Assembly: GCF_000400465.1 (NCBI RefSeq) | Contig: NW_008806277.1 | Location: 60,001 to 92,000 of the forward strand | DNA length: 32,000 nucleotides | DNA from: Wallemia ichthyophaga EXF-994 | Taxonomy: Eukaryota; Fungi; Basidiomycota | Direction of reading: 5' to 3' | Shown here: piece by piece, positions 17 through 15,173 of the stretch | Numbering within the stretch: the stretch's first letter is position 1 | How the letters are laid out: each line of letters begins with the position of its first letter | Translations under genes and position numbers: made by a program | The notes under the pieces: model-generated | The model's input: the letters and a program-made list of their open reading frames with translations, nothing else | Databases searched by the model: none | Told to the model about the DNA's origin: nothing

Positions 17-3000
17 TCACGGCCTCATTTTGTTACTATCATACGCATTGAATATTTTCTCTACCATGGTCTTGCTTGATGAGTTACTGTCTAATCTTGA
101 AAGAGTCAGTTGAAGCATCAGTTTGAGCGCGCTCCTTGGTAATTCCTTGCAAGCATCTATCTGATTAAACATAGCCATCACCGTACCTCGATCTGGATAA
201 TTGTGTGCTGATAAATAGACACCGGCTTCCCATTCAGGTCTTTTCCCAATAAGGACATCCCTAAGCACATGCTCTTCCACGCCACCTTTGCAAAGTGTTC
301 GGATAGCGTAAGTTATCATTGAGCTTTGCAGCAGTGGTGCGAGATAACCTAGCACACTCCTTAATGTGCCTCTATATGCGGCCTGCAGGTAATTGAGCTC
401 GCGAGCACTCAGAACAAGCTCTGTCGAGTTAGACCGAGAGTATGTCTTTTTATGTGCAAGATTGCATAAGCGGTTCAAGGTCAAATGATACCAAACACTG
501 ACAGGCTTGTCATTAGACAGCGCATCCAACAGCACAGCATCGATGAAATTGCAGCTGCCTCCAGACCTAGCGAAGCTTGCTAGAGACGACAAACTGCCAC
601 TCAGCTCCAGACTATTACCGACTTCTTCGTAGTTTTCGGAACGTAGCAGCCCCTGGTCGGGTGTGAGATCCGTCCTCAGGTTGGCTACAAGGTCAAGTCC
701 AGCCTTATTTCTGCTAGCGGTAGACTTCAGATTGCGAGGATCAGCTGCGTAGCTCAAATATCCTGCTTTCTTCTTAACGTAGAAAGTCTGTGATGTCTTG
801 AGATTCTTCAGACTGTTCTCATCGTTGAAATCAATAACAAGCGGCCAATATCTGGGCGAATCAATCTTCAGGCTGAGCAGTCTAGAATATTTGGGCACGA
901 GCGTTGGCGCTATCATCCTCATGCTTTTCGGCATCTTGTCCAATTCGTCGACAGCCTTGATCTTAATGGGAACATAGACAGCCTCATTAGTCTTGACATC
1001 GCGCGGAATAAAGCATCGTTTCTGTACAGCCTTCACCCACAAATGTCTGTATGCGAATGAATGGTTTGACTGATCGGCTGGCGTCATTGGCCATTTGGGG
1101 TACAGAGCGCACAAGAGGAATCCAACAGCTTCGTTTGAGTTAGTGAGCGTGTACTCTCCGCCTCCTAGAAATAGTAATCCAAGTGCCATATGCGTCGCCA
1201 TCTGTGAGCCGAAGTTTCTGCCACTTGATGCACCGAATTGACCGTGAGCTATGCGGAGACGCTTCAAGATTCCAAGTTCGCCAGTGCCAGCCATAACCGC
1301 CGCTAGTGCTACGGTTATTGTGTTCAGACCTGACCTGATTGCTGCTCGTTTCACTTTGCCCTCGTATGTGATAGCTGGAATGGGAGTCAAAGTGTCAGTC
1401 CATTAACCATCGCATTGTCACACAACCCACATTTAATCGATGCGGCTTGTGTGAAGAGATCCATATAGTAAAGTAGACACTCAAACGCATCGTCTTCGGC
1501 TGTACCCGCAAATTTGAGTCCTTGAGCAAGACATGCGCCGGCGACGATGTTGTAGTAGCCCAATTCGATACTATCATCCACAGACTCAAACCTATCCTTC
1601 TTTCTATCAAGAGCAGATCGTATGAACTGGGGTATTTGACTCTCAACCCACTCCTTCTTCCTGCCAATCGAATCCCACATGATGAGATTCTTGGCGAGAG
1701 TTCTAAATAGGAGGAAATCAGGTCTGATCCAATCTAATTCAGTGGAGTTGTGGGGTAGATCCATTAGAGACGCCACGTCGCTTCTCTCAGACTTTAGAAA
1801 CCACATTGCGAGTGCCAGTGTCGCGCCGGGACTGGTAAAGTTGGCGTCAAGGGCGTCAAACTCGATGCCCGACTTGTTGTGGCCGTGCTTATCGCCATGC
1901 ATATAGTGTCTCAGTTTTGTAATCATCTGCGTCTCTGATGGCGATGTCGCTTCTTTACCTTTCGCGAGCATGACTAATCCGAAGCCAAGAGCTGCCGATA
2001 ACGAGTAGCTTCCTCGCACGCTACCCTTTCCTTCGTTTGAAGGGACATCCACTCCACCGATCTCGCCAAGCAGAATCTCAGCCTGGCGTCTCTGCCGTGT
2101 ACCAAGGTGCGCAACACCCAAGCTGAACAGTCCTGCCGCCTGTGTGAGCCCCGAAAGATTGAATTCCAGTTGGTGAGTTGGTAGTATCGCGGGTACGTGT
2201 AGCGAGAAAGCCCCTATCAACCGTTCCGGCGGATCGCCTGCATAACTGATAGCAACACCAAGCATCGTCCCTATTGTCATAAATTCATTCTTGGGCTCGA
2301 GGAACTTCTGCACGTGCCCCAGCCACATACTGCGCAAATGGCCATTCATTCCTAGCCCCAGCATCAGACCAGAGTGACGCGCTGACATGACATTCTTGCT
2401 CGGTTTATTTAGCATGATCCAGCTCTCGTCCACTGTGAGCTGCTCATTCAGCTTCAAAGCTGAGGCGACACCATTTGAAAACTCCCCCCATTCTTTGAAT
2501 TCAGTCATGATTGCTGTGGATTCGATGTTGTACGTCGTGTTAGTCGGTATCATGCGCACACGATAGTCAAAATCCGGTATCTGTAGTGGACCTGCTGGAA
2601 CACTCTGACTTGTTCCGTAAGTCAGCATACCACGTCCATATGGCAGACTTAATGTGCGTTCTGGCATCTCGTTCGTAACATTTTCCTGCTCTTTCAAAAA
2701 GTCTGGTTCACTGTATTCTAGTTAGAGGGAGTTTTACCAAACAAGAAGCAAACCCACAGCAGTCCACTGGTGTTGAGAAAGCGCATGTTTGTCAACTCGC
2801 TGCCATCCAACATCTTTGCTACCTCTTTCAAGCGATGATCCTGTGAGAATCTCAACTTTGGTATTTCCATATTATCAAATTCGACACCGGAGCAATTCTT
2901 GTTTGAAGCATTACTTTCATCTTCCTTTTTAGTTTTAACTATATTCTTGATGGTCTCCATAGACGGTAAATCGCGCACATCATCACTCTTACCCTGCCGC

Positions 3001-5441
3001 TCTTTGGCATTAGCATTTGCGACAAGGTCCTCTCTCCCTATGAGCTGGTACGCTTCTGCTGACCATCGCAGTTTCGGTCTCATCTGGCATACACGCAGGA
3101 CCTCCTGCAAAATTACTGAGAGTTGTAGCGGTAGAGTTCTGATTTTTTCATTCGTGAAGCCATTACGTATCAACTCATCCACCGTGCCTTCGAGATTGTT
3201 GTCTCCTATCAACGTAAATACTTTTTGTAATGCTACTGTCGACTGTAGTTGCTGAGGCGGTATGACAGGATAAGAAGACGAGTTTCTATCCATCCTGCAC
3301 TGCAGATCTTTGTAGATACTCGGAGGCGGCTGGATATCAATTTCAACAGACGCATGGCTTCCACAGTCAAAAGGCAGAGGGGTATATTCCCCAGCCCATC
3401 GCTGCCACCAGCCTACATAGTCTTCGCGACGTGCAGCCTTACTCAGCCATCCTAGAATCGGAGCGAGATTAGCGAGATTCTCAAACCTCGTCGTGGTATC
3501 CAATAGCACATCTTCTGCAACAAGATGCAGAGCGAGCAAGACGTGATGAAGCGCTTGCGAATGCGGCTTCAAATCAGAAGCAGATTTGTGTTGCTCTTTC
3601 TTCATTGACTCAGGAGGAACTGCGAATATATTCGAGCTTCTCAGAGCGCGTTGATGGGCTTTAGTGTTGGTCAACCTATTCCAGCCATTGCTCATTGCTG
3701 CAGTGGGTGTTTCAAGGTGCTCGCATCGTATAAAATCAGCTAGTGTACTGATTAAAGCTTCAAGACCCTTATTTTGTGGTGTGAAGTGCTTAAACATTTT
3801 CCTTGCAAAGTCCGCTTTTTCTTCGTTGGTGCAGAGAGATGAAATGAGACTGGTGCACGATTTAACAACAGGTTCAATCGGCCACTGACCCAAGTTGAAA
3901 CGTCGAACTTTGGAAGTGGTAGTTTCGATTGTGAGACAGCTGCCATTGACATCCTTGAATGCTCTCGGTAGATCTCGTGAATCTTGAAACAAGCATGGAA
4001 ATAGTATAGACTTGGGTGATTTGTGTATGAGAATATGAAGTTGTTTGGCATTATCGAGAATAACCAGCTCATCGGTATGCTCCTGGGTACATCTAATGCT
4101 AGTCACCGCAGTAGCTACGGGGAATCCAGTATCCTTTTCTTCAATATGCAGCTGACTGGTTATGGGAAGGATGGGGTCTCGGCTCACTTTGATGACTATC
4201 AATTGCGATGACAGGCCAGAGAAATGGATGGCGAGAGAAATTTCGCTTTCAGACTGATCGAATGCGTGAGCGGAGGGAGTGCTGTAACGTCCAAATTAAA
4301 GATATTTCAAAAAGCATTAAAGCACGCACCTCGAATCTATATCAGCTGCTTTGCATTCCCAAAGCAAATCGATAAAAACGTCAGACTCGCTGGAAAGCGT
4401 CTGAGTCTCATCGGGTTTCGAGCCTGGTGGAGCTCTGTTGGAAGCAGATTCGCCAGCGAGAATCATTCTATCCATGGTGAGACTGATATCGCTATTATCG
4501 AACGTATTCTCGAGAGTAGTGTTGACCTTAGACTTGATACTGCTCCTACGACGATTCGGCTGCGGTCTCGGTGTTGAAGATCTCTTTAAGTTTGAAGACA
4601 CAATTGGAGCATTCGGGAGGGAGGAAGGTGCGGCATAATCAGGGGAGGGAGGATTGGTTTTGATGGGATGTTTGAGTCTGGTATAACGAAAAACACTGAG
4701 TGTCTTTGATTGTGAGTCAAACGAGATGAGAAATGGCCAATTGTGTTTTGTGGATTGGTTGTGTGGTTGCATGGGAGTGATGAGGACGATGCGAGATTTT
4801 GGACGCGGGGTGAAATCGAAAGGCCTGATAGGATTTCTGTAAGCGTCATAGCCTTTGCAGCCACCAATTGGTCTCCAAGGGTGCCAAATACCAGATAAAA
4901 CAGCCCAAGAGGACACCTTTTCACCGGCTCTGCGAGCGTCACTGCGTTCTACGAGCCAACCAAGGCCAAGGTCCCAGCTTCTGTAGAGGTTGAAAGGGAG
5001 TGGAAGAGAGTAATCAAGACCAGGATCGAGGAAGAACAAGCGTGCGAGATTAGCAGTGGAACTGATTGCCAAATCGAGGTCATTCTCGTTTGTGTTTGAG
5101 GTGAGGGTGGAGTGTAAAAACACTATGAGGCACTCTCTAGGCTTATCGTCTGCGCTGTTGAGATGGAGTTGTCCAAAAGACGCGTGTGAGATGTTGAGAT
5201 GATCGCTGTCGAATTTGAGAATGCGCTGGATATGCGAGTGGCTGCTAACAACGAGATGAGAATTCTGCCACGTGAGCTCGCGTTGGCCATGTAGAGATCT
5301 ATGCAATGGCAGTGGCAGCGGGGGCTGGTAGAGCTTAAATAGGCCAGGCTCAATGGAAGGAGGTGGTGGAGGATACGACGGGGATTTATTTATCTTATTA
5401 AGGTAGATGGTCGCAGGTGAATTGAGATTTATAATTTCCAT
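17..5441 (-). CDS. APC1: Anaphase-promoting complex subunit 1, about 1757 aa; exons 5441-4330, 4281-2758, 2710-1431, 1374-17
   Basis: Four consecutive minus-strand ORFs join in frame through three GT-AG introns (4282-4329, 2711-2757, 1375-1430; 48, 47, 56 nt), total 5274 nt. Recognised PC-repeat segments: HSGLMLGLGMNGHL, AGLFSLGVAHLGT, FTSPGATLALAMWFLKS, MATHMALGLLFLGGG, LYPKWP. Confidence 0.93.
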
Positions 5442-13562: not shown

Positions 13563-14276
13563 ATGAACTGGGTCGGAATACTAAAGAAGATATTCAAGAT
13601 ATGCGTGAAGGAGATAGAGAAGCATCAGGAGCAGCAGAGTGAGCCAACTCCAGCACCCTCGCAGAAACCAACGGGAGAATACATACCGCCCAAGGAATCG
13701 CTCGGAGAGAAGCGGATTAACGGTCAAGCAGCAGAGCAGTACTGGATGTCTCAGCCCGAGTACACGGAACTCCGCGACCGCGCCAACGCAGAAGGCGACA
13801 AGATGGGCAGGTGTTTCGACGCAGCCAGCAGTGCATACACCAGTGGTGACGGCGGTAGAGCTAAAGAGCTTAGCAACGAGGGCAAGGAGCATAAGAAGGA
13901 GCGCAGTCGCATTAACAAACAAGCCGCAGATTGGATCTTCGAGAAAAACAACCTCGATAACCGCCGCGATGAGGTCGATCTGCATGGCTTGTATGTTAAA
14001 GAGGCCATGGGGAAGGTGGAGGAAGCCATCGCCAATGCTCGCGTTTCTAATATCAACCCGCTCAAAGTCGTCGTCGGGCGCGGCACCCACTCTAAAAATC
14101 ATGTCTCAAAGATGAAGCCGGCGATTGAAGGTATGATGCGCAAAGAGAATCTGAGATGCAGAGTAGATCCAACCAACGCTGGCCAGCTGCTCGTATATCT
14201 CGATGGTCAGGGTGATGGAACGGATAATGCTGAGGACGTTGCCAAGGACACGGAGGATGCTTGTGTTATTATGTGA
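13563..14276 (+). CDS. DUF1771 + Smr domain protein (putative endonuclease), 237 aa, C-terminal CaaX motif CVIM
   Basis: DUF1771-like helical segment (ELRDRANAEGDKMGRCFDAASSAYTSGDGGRAKELSNEGKEH...AADWIF) followed by Smr motifs EVDLHGLYVKEA and VVVGRGTHS. Ends TGT GTT ATT ATG TGA. Confidence 0.92.
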   Translation: MNWVGILKKIFKICVKEIEKHQEQQSEPTPAPSQKPTGEYIPPKESLGEKRINGQAAEQYWMSQPEYTELRDRANAEGDKMGRCFDAASSAYTSGDGGRAKELSNEGKEHKKERSRINKQAADWIFEKNNLDNRRDEVDLHGLYVKEAMGKVEEAIANARVSNINPLKVVVGRGTHSKNHVSKMKPAIEGMMRKENLRCRVDPTNAGQLLVYLDGQGDGTDNAEDVAKDTEDACVIM

Positions 14277-14300
14277 TGTACACACCTATGTAATGTTATT

Positions 14301-15173
14301 CTACCTGCTATAGAAATTAATAACACCATCACTCCCACTGCTAACCATTTCCTCGCGTGTGGGGTGGTGGTCGACGTAAAGCACCGCCTTCTCGTGTGAC
14401 TTGTGCTGTGATACTATTCTACTCTCCAGCATATCCCATACGAGTAGTCTGCCATCCTCGCTGGTGCTGATGACAGACGAGTCACCAAGCCCGAAAGTAG
14501 AAACCGCTTTGAACTTCTCAGCGGCGTGACCGGAGAACGTAGCGAGGAGTTCTCCCGTCGCCGTATCTAGCAACCGCACTTTATTATCCAGCGTAGAGAC
14601 GAGGATGGCGGAGTTATCCGATGTAGGTTTAACAGAAGTGACGGCGTGATCGAGGTAATCCTGACGGAGCTGTCCAGCTCTAAGATCGTAAGTGCGCACA
14701 AAGCCATCTACGCTAGCAGAGTAAACGATGGAGCCACTGACACACACATCCACCACGCTATCCGAAGCATCGTCAAGTATCTGCAGAGGGAGACGCTGTC
14801 TAGCACGCATATCCCATATGCGCACCGTAGAGTCAAACGAGCCAGACAGTAGCACTGAGGCATCGCCGTTGAATGCCACCGTGTTCACTTTGCTGTCGTG
14901 TCCAACGCACCTGCGTACTGTCGCGCCCGCTTGCACATCCCATACAAATACACTCTTGTCTCCCCCGCAGCTGGCGAAATGGGTGTTGTCGGGCGTTATG
15001 CTCAACCCAAGCACCTCGTAGCCGTGCCCGTTGTACGCCTTCACTTGGCTCGCCGTGTGCGGATTCCATAGTCGTATACTGCGATCTCGCCCTCCACTTA
15101 GGCAATACCGCCCCGCATTGTTGTTGAACTTTACTACATTCACGGGCCCGCTGTGGCCGAGAAGTTGCGTCAT
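14301..15173 (-). CDS. WDR83: WD40-repeat protein of WDR83/MORG1 type, 290 aa
   Basis: Seven WD-like repeats. GHSGPVNVVKFN...YCLSGGRDRSIRLWNP, GHGYEV, FASCGGDKSVFVWDV and RTYDLRAGQL are typical of MORG1. Confidence 0.85.
   Translation of the reverse strand: MTQLLGHSGPVNVVKFNNNAGRYCLSGGRDRSIRLWNPHTASQVKAYNGHGYEVLGLSITPDNTHFASCGGDKSVFVWDVQAGATVRRCVGHDSKVNTVAFNGDASVLLSGSFDSTVRIWDMRARQRLPLQILDDASDSVVDVCVSGSIVYSASVDGFVRTYDLRAGQLRQDYLDHAVTSVKPTSDNSAILVSTLDNKVRLLDTATGELLATFSGHAAEKFKAVSTFGLGDSSVISTSEDGRLLVWDMLESRIVSQHKSHEKAVLYVDHHPTREEMVSSGSDGVINFYSR

Follow-up and report, generated by a model that had tools for sequence, protein, structure and literature searches.

Smr-domain nucleases such as Cue2, NONU-1, N4BP2 and SmrB are the long-sought cutters of mRNA at collided ribosomes, and to our knowledge every fungus has a second, small Smr protein besides the collision nuclease. 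In the stretch of Wallemia ichthyophaga EXF-994 DNA analysed here (32,000 nucleotides; the window), an open reading frame for a small Smr protein ends in CVIM, the CaaX motif of K-Ras4B. The locus raises the question of whether a putative RNA endonuclease is held at a membrane by lipid, and what it would do there.

In the ORF list of the window, the frame is a single intact ATG-to-TGA ORF (Table 1), and the exact 237-aa protein is recorded for W. ichthyophaga, which bears out the original assumption of a basidiomycete source. The gene order FBPase–Smr–WD40–cyclin is kept in a relative whose protein is 76% identical, and 24 bp separate the stop codon of the convergent WD40 gene from that of the Smr gene. 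Together with the domain assignments described below, the gene model and family placement can be accepted with great confidence.

Table 1. Features of the Smr locus, in positions of the window
Feature	Positions	Strand	Basis
Ypl199c/Nbr9-like DUF1771-Smr protein CDS, complete, intronless, 237 aa + TGA	13563..14276	+	ORF list; exact sequence in NCBI/UniRef
Amphipathic Lys-rich helix, residues 3-23, proposed second membrane-binding signal	13569..13631	+	AF2, hydrophobic moment, conservation
Cys14 codon TGC, candidate S-palmitoylation site	13602..13604	+	Helix position, conservation
Disordered Q/P/E-rich linker, residues 24-60, length varies among species	13632..13742	+	AF2, alignment A1
DUF1771 domain, residues 67-130, long helical hairpin before Smr	13761..13952	+	Pfam PF08590, AF2
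Smr domain, residues 138-212	13974..14198	+	Pfam PF01713, Foldseek, family profile
DLHG, Smr motif I, residues 139-142	13977..13988	+	Alignment A1, N4BP2 profile alignment
GRGTHS, Smr motif II, residues 172-177	14076..14093	+	Alignment A1, N4BP2 profile alignment
Acidic disordered tether, residues 213-233, net charge -7	14199..14261	+	AF2, computed charge
CaaX box CVIM, Cys234-Val-Ile-Met237, predicted farnesylation site	14262..14273	+	Conservation, motif rules
'Intron' of the alternative 274-aa NCBI model, removes VIM; not part of the gene	14265..14447	+	Mapping
'Exon 2' of the alternative 274-aa NCBI model; not part of the gene	14448..14570	+	Mapping
WD40 beta-propeller protein gene, convergent neighbour	14301..15173	-	ORF list and Pfam

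Within the 237 aa, Pfam detects only DUF1771 (E 6.9e-25; 87.6 bits, cut-off 28.7) and Smr (match residues 138–196, E 1.1e-8; 35.6 bits, gathering score 25.7), with no CUE/UBA match in the protein at E up to 0.01 and only about 60 aa upstream of DUF1771. This arrangement fits the Ypl199c/Nbr9-like clade, whose members carry DUF1771 directly before Smr in about 240 aa, without CUE/UBA or kinase domains and with a variable low-complexity region upstream of the domains (bioRxiv 10.1101/674358). The AF2 model (mean pLDDT 80) combines a confident helical hairpin and Smr alpha/beta core with disordered tethers. Specifically, the DUF1771 helices span residues 65–93 and 97–129 (pLDDT about 98) and the Smr core reaches pLDDT 87–98; values below 50 extend across most of residues 26–52 and through residues 217–237, the latter forming a flexible C-terminal segment. 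The upstream linker is also the main length-variable part of alignment A1, which holds 31 sequences spanning Basidiomycota, Mucorales and two Ascomycota.

Foldseek ranks the N4BP2 Smr domain (2vkc, 2d9i, 3fau), the MutS2 Smr domain and YdaL as top matches to this model (2vkc: E 6.5e-5, TMt 0.70; 4och: TMt 0.81), and the family profile matches the N4BP2 Smr domain at E 1e-19. Both Smr signature motifs are preserved: in A1, L140, H141 and G142 never vary and D139 reaches at least 90% conservation, the motif aligning with DLHG of N4BP2, while GRGTHS stands inside VVVGRGTHS and aligns with N4BP2 GRGNHS. The invariant columns of A1 include H141, G142, G172, G174, H176 and S177, as well as C234 and M237 at the C-terminus. 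The ORF is very probably the W. ichthyophaga orthologue in the Ypl199c/Nbr9-like clade of eukaryotic Smr proteins, and the intact frame with DUF1771, Smr, DLHG, GRGTHS and a CVIM ending that the original prediction described is borne out by the ORF list and Pfam.

The C-terminus reads ...TEDACVIM, encoded by TGT GTT ATT ATG TGA across 14262..14276 (Cys234 codon 14262..14264, TGA 14274..14276), with the Cys exactly four residues from the end. Val-Ile-Met fits the FTase rule that a1 and a2 are aliphatic and X is one of M, S, Q, A or C. On yeast reporters CVIM, CIIM, CSIM and CLIM are fully farnesylated, and the same four motifs are alternately geranylgeranylated in ram1-delta (PMC11152559). Positional statistics were taken over 376 full-length family members, the best-scoring, full-length matches of profiles built with the C-terminal columns included, so that ascertainment raises the percentages somewhat. 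Cys stands at position -4 in 295 of them (78.5%) and Met at position -1 in 259. The overall Cys frequency of the family is 1.35%, and positions -2, -3, -6 and -8 to -12 each hold at most 3% Cys in the same members. These positional Cys and Met statistics rule out a chance origin of CVIM.

Closer to Wallemia, the four nearest relatives end in CIVM, CIVM, CTIM and CTIM, and the pattern TGT-nnn-nnn-ATG-stop is kept in three Wallemia-lineage loci, with similarity dropping directly after the stop. Within the Basidiomycota/Mucoromycota set, 139 of 147 full-length members have a Cxxx ending, and X is Met in 137. When the endings of orthologues were tabulated, as had been proposed for the CaaX motif, it proved to be kept in these relatives and across phyla. 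It is very likely, on this comparative record of sequences, that the Wallemia Smr protein is functionally prenylated; membrane tethering of some kind is almost certain, because the last four residues form a deeply conserved lipid-attachment signal. The surroundings of the box differ from those in K-Ras4B, which has a polybasic region beside its CaaX where the Wallemia protein has an acidic stretch. No transmembrane segment or signal-peptide-like uninterrupted hydrophobic run was found in the Wallemia protein.

A second candidate signal lies at the opposite end. The Wallemia N-terminus reads MNWVGILKKIFKICVKE, and AF2 folds its Lys-rich segment into a helix (pLDDT about 75), placing Cys14 centrally on the hydrophobic face. 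Treated as a helix, residues 2–19 give a hydrophobic moment of 0.535, where 5000 shuffles average 0.246 (p = 0.016), and residues 1–16 carry a net charge of +4, in agreement with the earlier description of this N-terminus as amphipathic, Lys-rich and Cys-containing. The helix is kept in all five Wallemia-lineage sequences, and a parallel is seen in Agaricomycotina, whose N-terminus takes the form 'M[GS]-hydrophobic helix-C-G'. Moreover, a Cys within residues 3–30 occurs in 120 of 147 members of the Basidiomycota/Mucoromycota set versus 3 of 115 in the Ascomycota set, whose members use CC-aaX or CxC in its place. N-myristoylation is excluded in Wallemia by the M-N-W start, which presents Asn2 and not the Gly2 that this modification needs, usually together with a small residue or Ser/Thr at position 6; S-palmitoylation has no strict consensus. 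The N-terminal element is probably a second membrane signal.

The chemistry of the predicted anchors varies across lineages. Basidiomycota combine CaaX with the N-terminal helix and Cys as second signal, and Mucorales, Glomeromycota, chytrids and a green alga begin with a myristoylation-type MGxxxS sequence, met in these relatives as MGNSQS, MGQIAS, MGNLQS and MGNLLS. This start is paired with CaaX in Acaulospora (Glomeromycota), Fimicolochytrium (chytrid) and Chlamydomonas leiostraca (green alga), and an N-terminal Cys or MG start is present in 125 of the 137 single-Cys CaaX members of the Basidiomycota/Mucoromycota set. Pezizomycotina place CC-aaX after a basic amphipathic helix, with an N-terminal signal almost never present; Saccharomycotina end in a C-terminal CxC without CaaX; and in some unannotated relatives terminal TM-like segments replace the lipid signals. 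As read from motifs, the complementary second signals are the classical two-signal logic of prenylated proteins. The tether is kept throughout the fungi and in at least one green alga, as a prenyl CaaX in most lineages and as palmitoylation only in budding yeasts. This swap of prenyl for palmitoyl indicates that membrane attachment, and not one lipid, is the conserved trait, which provides a concrete start for finding the function of the clade.

The yeast protein Ypl199c/Nbr9 closely resembles the Wallemia protein in carrying DUF1771 and Smr without a CUE domain (240 versus 237 aa), and is a plasma-membrane-localised proximity partner of Lam1-4. Both proteins have a C-terminal Cys, which serves as a lipid anchor in Ypl199c/Nbr9 and is conserved in a CaaX context instead in Wallemia. 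Yeast and other Saccharomycotina place CxC in a C-terminal amphipathic helix with no CaaX, whereas Wallemia has a single-Cys CaaX ending in Met, and the Wallemia N-terminal amphipathic helix with Cys14 is absent from the ascomycete proteins. Family profiles recover Saccharomycotina members at E <=1e-76: the basidiomycete profile retrieves the Spathaspora protein at E 9.8e-89, and the ascomycete profile many proteins whose CxC C-terminus matches the yeast palmitoylation site. Several family matches are named after S. pombe C11H11.03c; the S. cerevisiae YPL199C sequence is absent among the matches listed, so that the link to yeast rests on its Saccharomycotina relatives.

Ypl199c is an Akr1-dependent palmitoyl protein (PMC3145546), and Nbr9 is palmitoylated at C233/C235, depends on palmitoylation for its plasma-membrane localisation and sits on the cytosolic side of that membrane (Nbr9 preprint). 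Deletion of YPL199C weakly derepresses a nonstop reporter, a small effect, in a study that treats Ypl199c as a NONU-1 homologue (bioRxiv 10.1101/674358). In addition, Ypl199c is biotinylated by Rps3-BirA* in an Asc1-dependent manner, indicating proximity to uS3 on the 40S head (PMC8583833). The nuclease activity of Nbr9 was not separable from a contaminant, and no clear phenotype was observed (Nbr9 preprint).

Lipid anchoring at one or both ends, as originally proposed, gains support from the CaaX box, from N-terminal conservation and from yeast palmitoylation. The prenyl anchor appears uncharacterised, in line with the accompanying remark that no characterised prenylated Smr nuclease was known, while lipid anchoring as such is already known for this clade from yeast. 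Searches of the literature for prenylated or myristoylated Smr-domain proteins returned only irrelevant papers or none, and membranes and lipids go unmentioned in the NONU-1 preprint in which the ypl199c-like clade is defined (bioRxiv 10.1101/674358). The prenyl version of the anchor and its breadth are not in the searched papers. One further candidate, SppC, a septal-pore CUE-Smr-DUF1771 protein of Aspergillus oryzae, was set aside as a Cue2-type paralogue outside the Ypl199c-like clade.

Likeness to Cue2, NONU-1 and N4BP2 lies in the catalytic DUF1771-Smr module with its DLHG and G(R/K)GxHS motifs, and by both structure and profile the best match is N4BP2 Smr; in contrast to these proteins, the Wallemia protein is much smaller and lacks a CUE/UBA or P-loop kinase domain. 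Cue2 is recruited through its CUE domains to ubiquitinated collided ribosomes, whereas the Wallemia clade would rely on membrane tethering. The bacterial ribosome-collision endonucleases SmrB and MutS2 share the Smr fold, with weaker Foldseek matches to MutS2 Smr (4och), YdaL (3qd7) and SmrB on the disome (7qgr), but at 17–24% identity they lack DUF1771 and lipid anchors and are recruited by an N-terminal hook or the MutS2 clamp. At its C-terminus the Wallemia protein belongs with Ras-type CaaX proteins (K-Ras4B CVIM; yeast Ras2 CCIIS; Rho3 CIIM, Rho4 CTIM), sharing the class C-aliphatic-I/V-M, and a Ras-like CC-aaX is present in Pezizomycotina orthologues. As is predicted for members of the Smr clade, Ras-type proteins join a prenyl group to a second signal, which may be an acyl-Cys, a basic amphipathic helix or a myristate. 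Unlike them, the Smr protein is not a GTPase, and its second signal in Basidiomycota and early-diverging fungi lies at the opposite terminus, so that both termini would fasten the protein to the membrane.

The explanation that we favour, and consider likely overall, is that of a farnesylated, two-tether membrane Smr protein and putative endoribonuclease. In the sequence of events that we infer, the cytosolic CaaX farnesyltransferase would farnesylate Cys234, with geranylgeranyltransferase-I as a possible back-up because X is Met and a2 is Ile. The -VIM tripeptide would then be trimmed and the new C-terminus carboxymethylated at the ER. With the acidic stretch before the CaaX (net -7), a single farnesyl would hold the membrane weakly, and the second signal would come from the basic amphipathic N-terminal helix, whose Cys14 is probably S-palmitoylated. 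Two flexible tethers would then suspend the folded DUF1771-Smr core on the cytosolic side of a membrane, most likely the plasma membrane by analogy with yeast. There the Smr domain, with its strictly conserved DxH and GxGxHS, would most likely act as an endoribonuclease on ribosome-associated mRNA. Of the original claim of RNA cleavage at a membrane, the membrane part is supported and the cleavage part is still an inference; membrane-proximal mRNA cleavage by the Wallemia protein is a tentative proposal whose chances we put somewhat short of even. If the nuclease role is true, it would amount to spatially restricted mRNA surveillance at membranes.

A broader and more speculative reading, which we regard as possible but rather unlikely, extends this proposal to the whole clade, making Ypl199c-like DUF1771-Smr proteins an ancient, obligately membrane-tethered Smr branch that runs a ubiquitin-independent, membrane-proximal arm of no-go/nonstop decay. 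The ancestor would have been pinned at both ends by an N-myristate and a C-terminal prenyl group, a form that would persist in chytrids, Glomeromycota, Mucorales and a green alga. Subsequent lineages would have changed the anchor chemistry (helix plus acyl-Cys, CC-aaX, CxC or TM segments) without ever losing the tether, and the proteins would cut mRNAs whose ribosomes stall at the plasma membrane or cortical ER or close by. Such a decay arm may have been overlooked because C-terminal tags and soluble reporters would hide it.

The anchors may alternatively sequester the enzyme, parking a potentially harmful nuclease away from its substrates until it is depalmitoylated or its second signal is lost and it becomes active elsewhere, in the cytosol, ER or nucleus. 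Proteins that carry both farnesyl and palmitoyl groups do cycle between plasma membrane and endomembranes, as in Ras trafficking. Sequestration was proposed by the authors of the Nbr9 preprint because a plasma-membrane nuclease has no obvious substrate, and the BioID proximity to the 40S head (PMC8583833) suggests that at least part of the Ypl199c pool meets ribosomes. Some relatives, however, carry apparently irreversible anchors (N-myristoyl plus prenyl, or TM-like), which points to a job at the membrane, and DNA-damaging agents did not relocalise Nbr9 in yeast (Nbr9 preprint). Sequestration is on balance unlikely.

Two further alternatives change the activity itself, and both are highly improbable. 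In the first, the protein would be an ESCRT-III-like membrane remodeller, its DUF1771 hairpin corresponding to Snf7 alpha1-alpha2 and its Smr domain acting as a non-nuclease. An HHpred likeness of Ypl199c to this Snf7 hairpin is reported in the Nbr9 preprint, which itself contains no evidence for such a role, and Foldseek adds weak matches to CdvB2, PspA and Vipp1 (E 0.6–1.5, TM 0.24–0.35); these are non-significant and expected from any long helical hairpin, Pfam finds no Snf7 domain, and the invariant DxH and GxGxHS are difficult to account for unless the protein is catalytic or binds nucleic acid. In the second, the protein would nick DNA in recombination or repair in the manner of N4BP2 and MutS2, in line with the first characterisation of the MutS2 and N4BP2/B3BP Smr domains as DNA-nicking (PMC3200294) and with N4BP2 Smr as the nearest solved structure. 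A protein on the cytosolic face of a membrane cannot reach chromosomal DNA, though, yeast Nbr9 stayed in place after DNA damage (Nbr9 preprint), and the eukaryotic DUF1771-Smr relatives with a demonstrated in vivo role, Cue2 and NONU-1, act on mRNA.

The farnesylated form would lose its basis if the true product were instead a soluble, spliced 274-aa protein without VIM, the CaaX box being an artefact of intron read-through. A spliced C-terminus lacking CVIM, which the original prediction had envisaged, does exist as an NCBI model: three 274-aa members of the same 90% cluster, with accessions from several W. ichthyophaga strains, diverge exactly after Cys234. The model nevertheless fails on comparative evidence. 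NCBI also holds 237-aa models for W. ichthyophaga, the GT of the proposed donor GTTATT is missing in relatives (ATT, ACG), and all close and distant orthologues end at CaaX. Moreover, 'exon 2' falls within the WD40 CDS in antisense orientation, where comparison with relative L001 gives 3 synonymous and 23 non-synonymous codon differences in the 'exon 2' plus-strand frame versus 16 and 10 in the WD40 frame. No transcript-derived contigs were found for the 3' end; all protein-carrying contigs look genomic, since they are syntenic and include neighbouring genes. The 274-aa product is barely credible on this record, and automated models of several W. ichthyophaga strains that splice away the CaaX are very probably wrong.

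Equally far-fetched is the idea that a secretory signal peptide or mitochondrial presequence forms the N-terminus and takes the protein to a compartment where the CaaX is never modified. In its favour, the Wallemia segment is short, stands at the N-terminus, is hydrophobic or amphipathic and carries positive charge, and agaricomycete versions such as MSLVKFLSALVNLLCGGS are superficially signal-peptide-like. Against it, four Lys break the hydrophobic run in Wallemia with Glu17 and Glu19 directly after, the homologous position in other lineages forms the MGxxxS start of a cytosolic modification, a strictly conserved CaaX needs a cytosolic C-terminus, and the yeast orthologue lies on the cytosolic side of the plasma membrane.

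The position of the anchors has a practical consequence, as C-terminal tags, and outside Ascomycota N-terminal tags too, will mislocalise proteins of this clade. No functional gene cluster was found around the Smr gene among the genes of the window, and no tRNAs were found in the window. The neighbours are ordinary housekeeping genes, encoding APC1, a GH5 glucanase, FBPase, the WD40 protein, a cyclin, a CMAS-type methyltransferase, IDO, a SAPS protein and a DEAH helicase.

The Smr gene carries an uninterrupted reading frame of 237 codons from ATG to TGA in the ORF list, with the N-terminus MNWVGILKKIFKICVKE and the C-terminus TEDACVIM directly followed by TGA. Pfam assigns DUF1771 to residues 67–130 (E 6.9e-25) and the Smr domain to residues 138–196 (E 1.1e-8), both above the curated cut-off, and finds no other domain in the protein. 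Specifically, DLHG occupies residues 139–142 and the VVVGRGTHS motif ends at residue 177. The DLHG, VVGRGTHS, CVIM and N-terminal elements quoted in the original prediction are all present, and its guess of Basidiomycota was right, an identical protein being recorded for Wallemia ichthyophaga (Wallemiomycetes). The AF2 model, built with a 31-sequence alignment (Basidiomycota, Mucorales and two Ascomycota), reaches a mean pLDDT of 80. It begins with a helix and a disordered linker, continues with the DUF1771 helical hairpin (residues 65–129), modelled with very high confidence, and an α/β Smr core (residues 137–212), and ends in a disordered tail. The best Foldseek matches in the PDB are to the N4BP2 Smr domain (2vkc, 2d9i, 3fau), followed by MutS2 Smr, YdaL and ribosome-bound SmrB, and a search with the profile of the family recovers N4BP2 Smr (E 1e-19), the DLHG, GRGNHS and KPA motifs being aligned.

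C234 and M237 form invariant columns in the 31-sequence alignment, as do the Smr residues H141, G142, G172, G174, H176 and S177, and the four nearest relatives (63–76% identity) end in CIVM, CIVM, CTIM and CTIM. Among 376 distinct full-length members pooled from three profile searches, position −4 is Cys in 78.5%, −1 is Met in 259 and −2 is mostly I or V, fractions somewhat inflated by lists that hold the top-scoring matches of profiles including the C-terminal columns. Overall Cys frequency in the family is 1.35%, and positions near the CaaX box other than −5 and −7 reach at most 3%. Judged from sequence, conservation of the box is beyond chance, the inflation being too small to matter given the effect size; recurrence of the box in orthologues, which the original prediction had named as a test, is seen in close relatives, and most of the 376 members have Cys at −4. 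Motif chemistry points the same way: CVIM, CIIM, CSIM, CAIM and CLIM each direct full farnesylation of yeast reporters, with geranylgeranylation as the alternative once FTase is deleted (PMC11152559).

Residues 3–23 are predicted to form an amphipathic helix (hydrophobic moment 0.535, p = 0.016 versus shuffles, net charge +4) that places Cys14 in the middle of its hydrophobic face; the computed moment and the helix prediction agree with the Cys-containing amphipathic N-terminus first proposed. At the opposite end, residues 217–237 are predicted to be disordered, and the 21 residues preceding the CaaX box carry a net charge of −7, whereas K-Ras4B has a polybasic stretch there. Across lineages, Agaricomycotina combine an N-terminal M-(G/S)-hydrophobic helix-C-G with a single-Cys CaaX, Pucciniomycotina a basic amphipathic helix with a single-Cys CaaX, and Mucorales, Acaulospora (Glomeromycota), Fimicolochytrium (chytrid) and Chlamydomonas leiostraca (green alga) an MGxxxS start, the N-myristoylation consensus, with a CaaX. 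Pezizomycotina have no N-terminal element and end in a basic amphipathic helix followed by CC-[VIT][VI]M, a CC-aaX type ending like that of Ras, and Saccharomycotina have neither an N-terminal element nor a CaaX, ending in LLIKxxCxCLNSK. An N-terminal Cys or MG start occurs in 125 of 137 single-Cys CaaX members (Basidiomycota/Mucoromycota set) and in only 1 of 85 CC-aaX members (Ascomycota set), counts that are phylogenetically non-independent. On these predicted signals, the lineage pattern is textbook two-signal logic, with the chemistry swapped and the tether kept. Additionally, a few unannotated relatives, represented by P0361, P0382, P0393, P0395, P0401 and P0416, and by P0368, P0378, P0387 and P0389, carry a TM-like hydrophobic segment at one terminus, either a tail-anchor-like C-terminal end of ~20 residues or an N-terminal stretch, and no lipidation motifs, which suggests that transmembrane anchors took over from lipid anchors in some members.

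In the proposed mechanism, Cys234 would be farnesylated in the cytosol, with removal of -VIM and then carboxymethylation at the ER, and stable membrane capture would be provided by the N-terminal basic amphipathic helix together with probable S-acylation of Cys14. Two flexible tethers would hold the DUF1771–Smr module against a membrane on its cytosolic side, with the plasma membrane as the likeliest candidate, and there the strictly conserved Smr site would most likely cleave ribosome-associated mRNA. The lipidation and capture steps draw on strong conservation and yeast precedent; mRNA cleavage, the least certain step, draws on Cue2/NONU-1 homology and weak yeast genetics. The main alternative, in which the protein is merely stored at the membrane and works elsewhere, is opposed by the relatives with apparently permanent anchors.

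The yeast precedent is Ypl199c, the putative S. cerevisiae orthologue and a plasma-membrane-localised proximity partner of the ER–PM tethers Lam1-4. Its palmitoylation is Akr1-dependent, and palmitate is described, in a passage citing Roth et al. 2006, as its sole membrane link (PMC3145546). Renamed Nbr9 in a 2024 preprint, it lies at the plasma membrane and loses this location in a C233S/C235S mutant; an attempt to demonstrate specific nuclease activity failed, and there was no clear phenotype (bioRxiv 10.1101/2024.03.07.583924). Moreover, loss of the gene (ypl199c-delta) causes weak derepression of a his3-nonstop reporter (bioRxiv 10.1101/674358), and Ypl199c receives biotin from Rps3/uS3, a labelling that depends on Asc1 (PMC8583833). 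Lipid anchoring of an Smr protein is thus not new; the Wallemia protein differs from this case in its predicted prenyl group and N-terminal signal. The lipid anchoring put forward in the original prediction gains support from this precedent and from the conserved predicted anchor signals. In a literature search of incomplete coverage, no paper was found that connects CaaX boxes, farnesylation or myristoylation with Smr proteins, an absence of evidence only; membranes and lipids also go unmentioned in the paper defining the ypl199c-like clade. The present analysis adds evidence that membrane tethering of the family is ancient and family-wide.

Coordinates of the Smr gene, its competing model and neighbouring features
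Feature	Sequence	Position	Strand
Smr ORF	window	13563..14276	+
Smr TGA	window	14274..14276	+
Conflicting annotations	window	14265..14570	
274-aa model, donor GT (GTTATT)	window	14265	+
274-aa model, intron	window	14265..14447	+
274-aa model, exon 2	window	14448..14570	+
Convergent WD40 ORF end	window	14301	-
Smr/WD40 stop codons	window	14274..14303	
Apparent WD40 intron (GTAAGT...)	L001	~4960..5010	-
Continuous WD40 ORF at matching site	window	~14400..14440	-
APC1/PC-repeat ORFs	window	17..1390, 1387..2697, 2718..4202 (together 17..4202)	-

Public annotations of W. ichthyophaga strains conflict on this gene, NCBI holding a 237-aa model (P0061, P0063) identical to the window ORF and a 274-aa model (P0001, P0062, P0064) that departs from it exactly past Cys234, losing the CaaX box and gaining 40 residues antisense to the WD40 CDS, within which its exon 2 lies. 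Exon 2 was compared with L001, the syntenic contig of the relative with the 76%-identical Smr protein. Of the codons that differ, 3 are synonymous and 23 non-synonymous when read in the + frame of the 274-aa model, versus 16 and 10 in the minus-strand WD40 frame; selection is therefore confined to the latter frame. Relatives lack the donor GT and read TGT-ATT-GTA-ATG-TAA and TGT-ACG-ATT-ATG-TAA instead, and nucleotide similarity with them collapses at once past the Smr stop codon. Transcript-derived contigs were sought, but every contig carrying the protein looks genomic. The spliced model is rejected on its antisense overlap, the codon-difference pattern and the missing donor; a spliced C-terminus without CVIM, the outcome the original prediction had set against its own reading, exists as an annotation and fails on comparative evidence. 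The true product is concluded, from these comparisons, to be the 237-aa protein ending in CVIM. The convergent stop codons are only 24 bp apart, so the 3′ UTRs of the Smr and WD40 genes must overlap, and this arrangement probably led gene prediction astray, to the 274-aa model. The WD40 orthologue in L001 has an apparent intron where the W. ichthyophaga ORF is continuous, suggesting intron loss in this very compact genome.

An ESCRT-III reading of the protein is unsupported, the Foldseek matches of the DUF1771 hairpin (model me9e11de722b0) to CdvB2, PspA and Vipp1 being weak and non-significant (E 0.6–1.5). These matches to ESCRT-III superfamily filaments echo the HHpred similarity behind the yeast name Nbr9.

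The Smr gene has housekeeping neighbours, with FBPase upstream on the minus strand and the convergent WD40 gene, then cyclin, downstream, an order common to the relative with the 76%-identical protein. At the window start, three successive ORFs with APC1 and PC-repeat domains seem to be exons or frame segments belonging to a single large gene for APC1 (anaphase-promoting complex subunit 1) running off the edge.

Several family members are unusual. P0050, labelled Amanita muscaria Koide BX008, has a Mucorales-type MGNSQS start and an LSWLDR motif and is 57% identical to a Thamnidium protein; its sequence points either to a contaminating contig from some early-diverging fungus or to a second, distinct paralogue. 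The longer DUF1771–Smr–CaaX models P0216 and P0259 (Dothideomycetes, 541–588 aa) and P0149 (Pleurotus pulmonarius, 450 aa) include a Use1 SNARE-like (PF09753) or DnaJ (PF00226) domain and are probably neighbouring genes merged by annotation; a genuine SNARE fusion would be of note. P0126 (Spathaspora sp. JA1, 452 aa) contains two tandem DUF1771–Smr units in one predicted protein, versus a single 246-aa protein in S. passalidarum, which points to a tandem duplication or else to a fused gene model.
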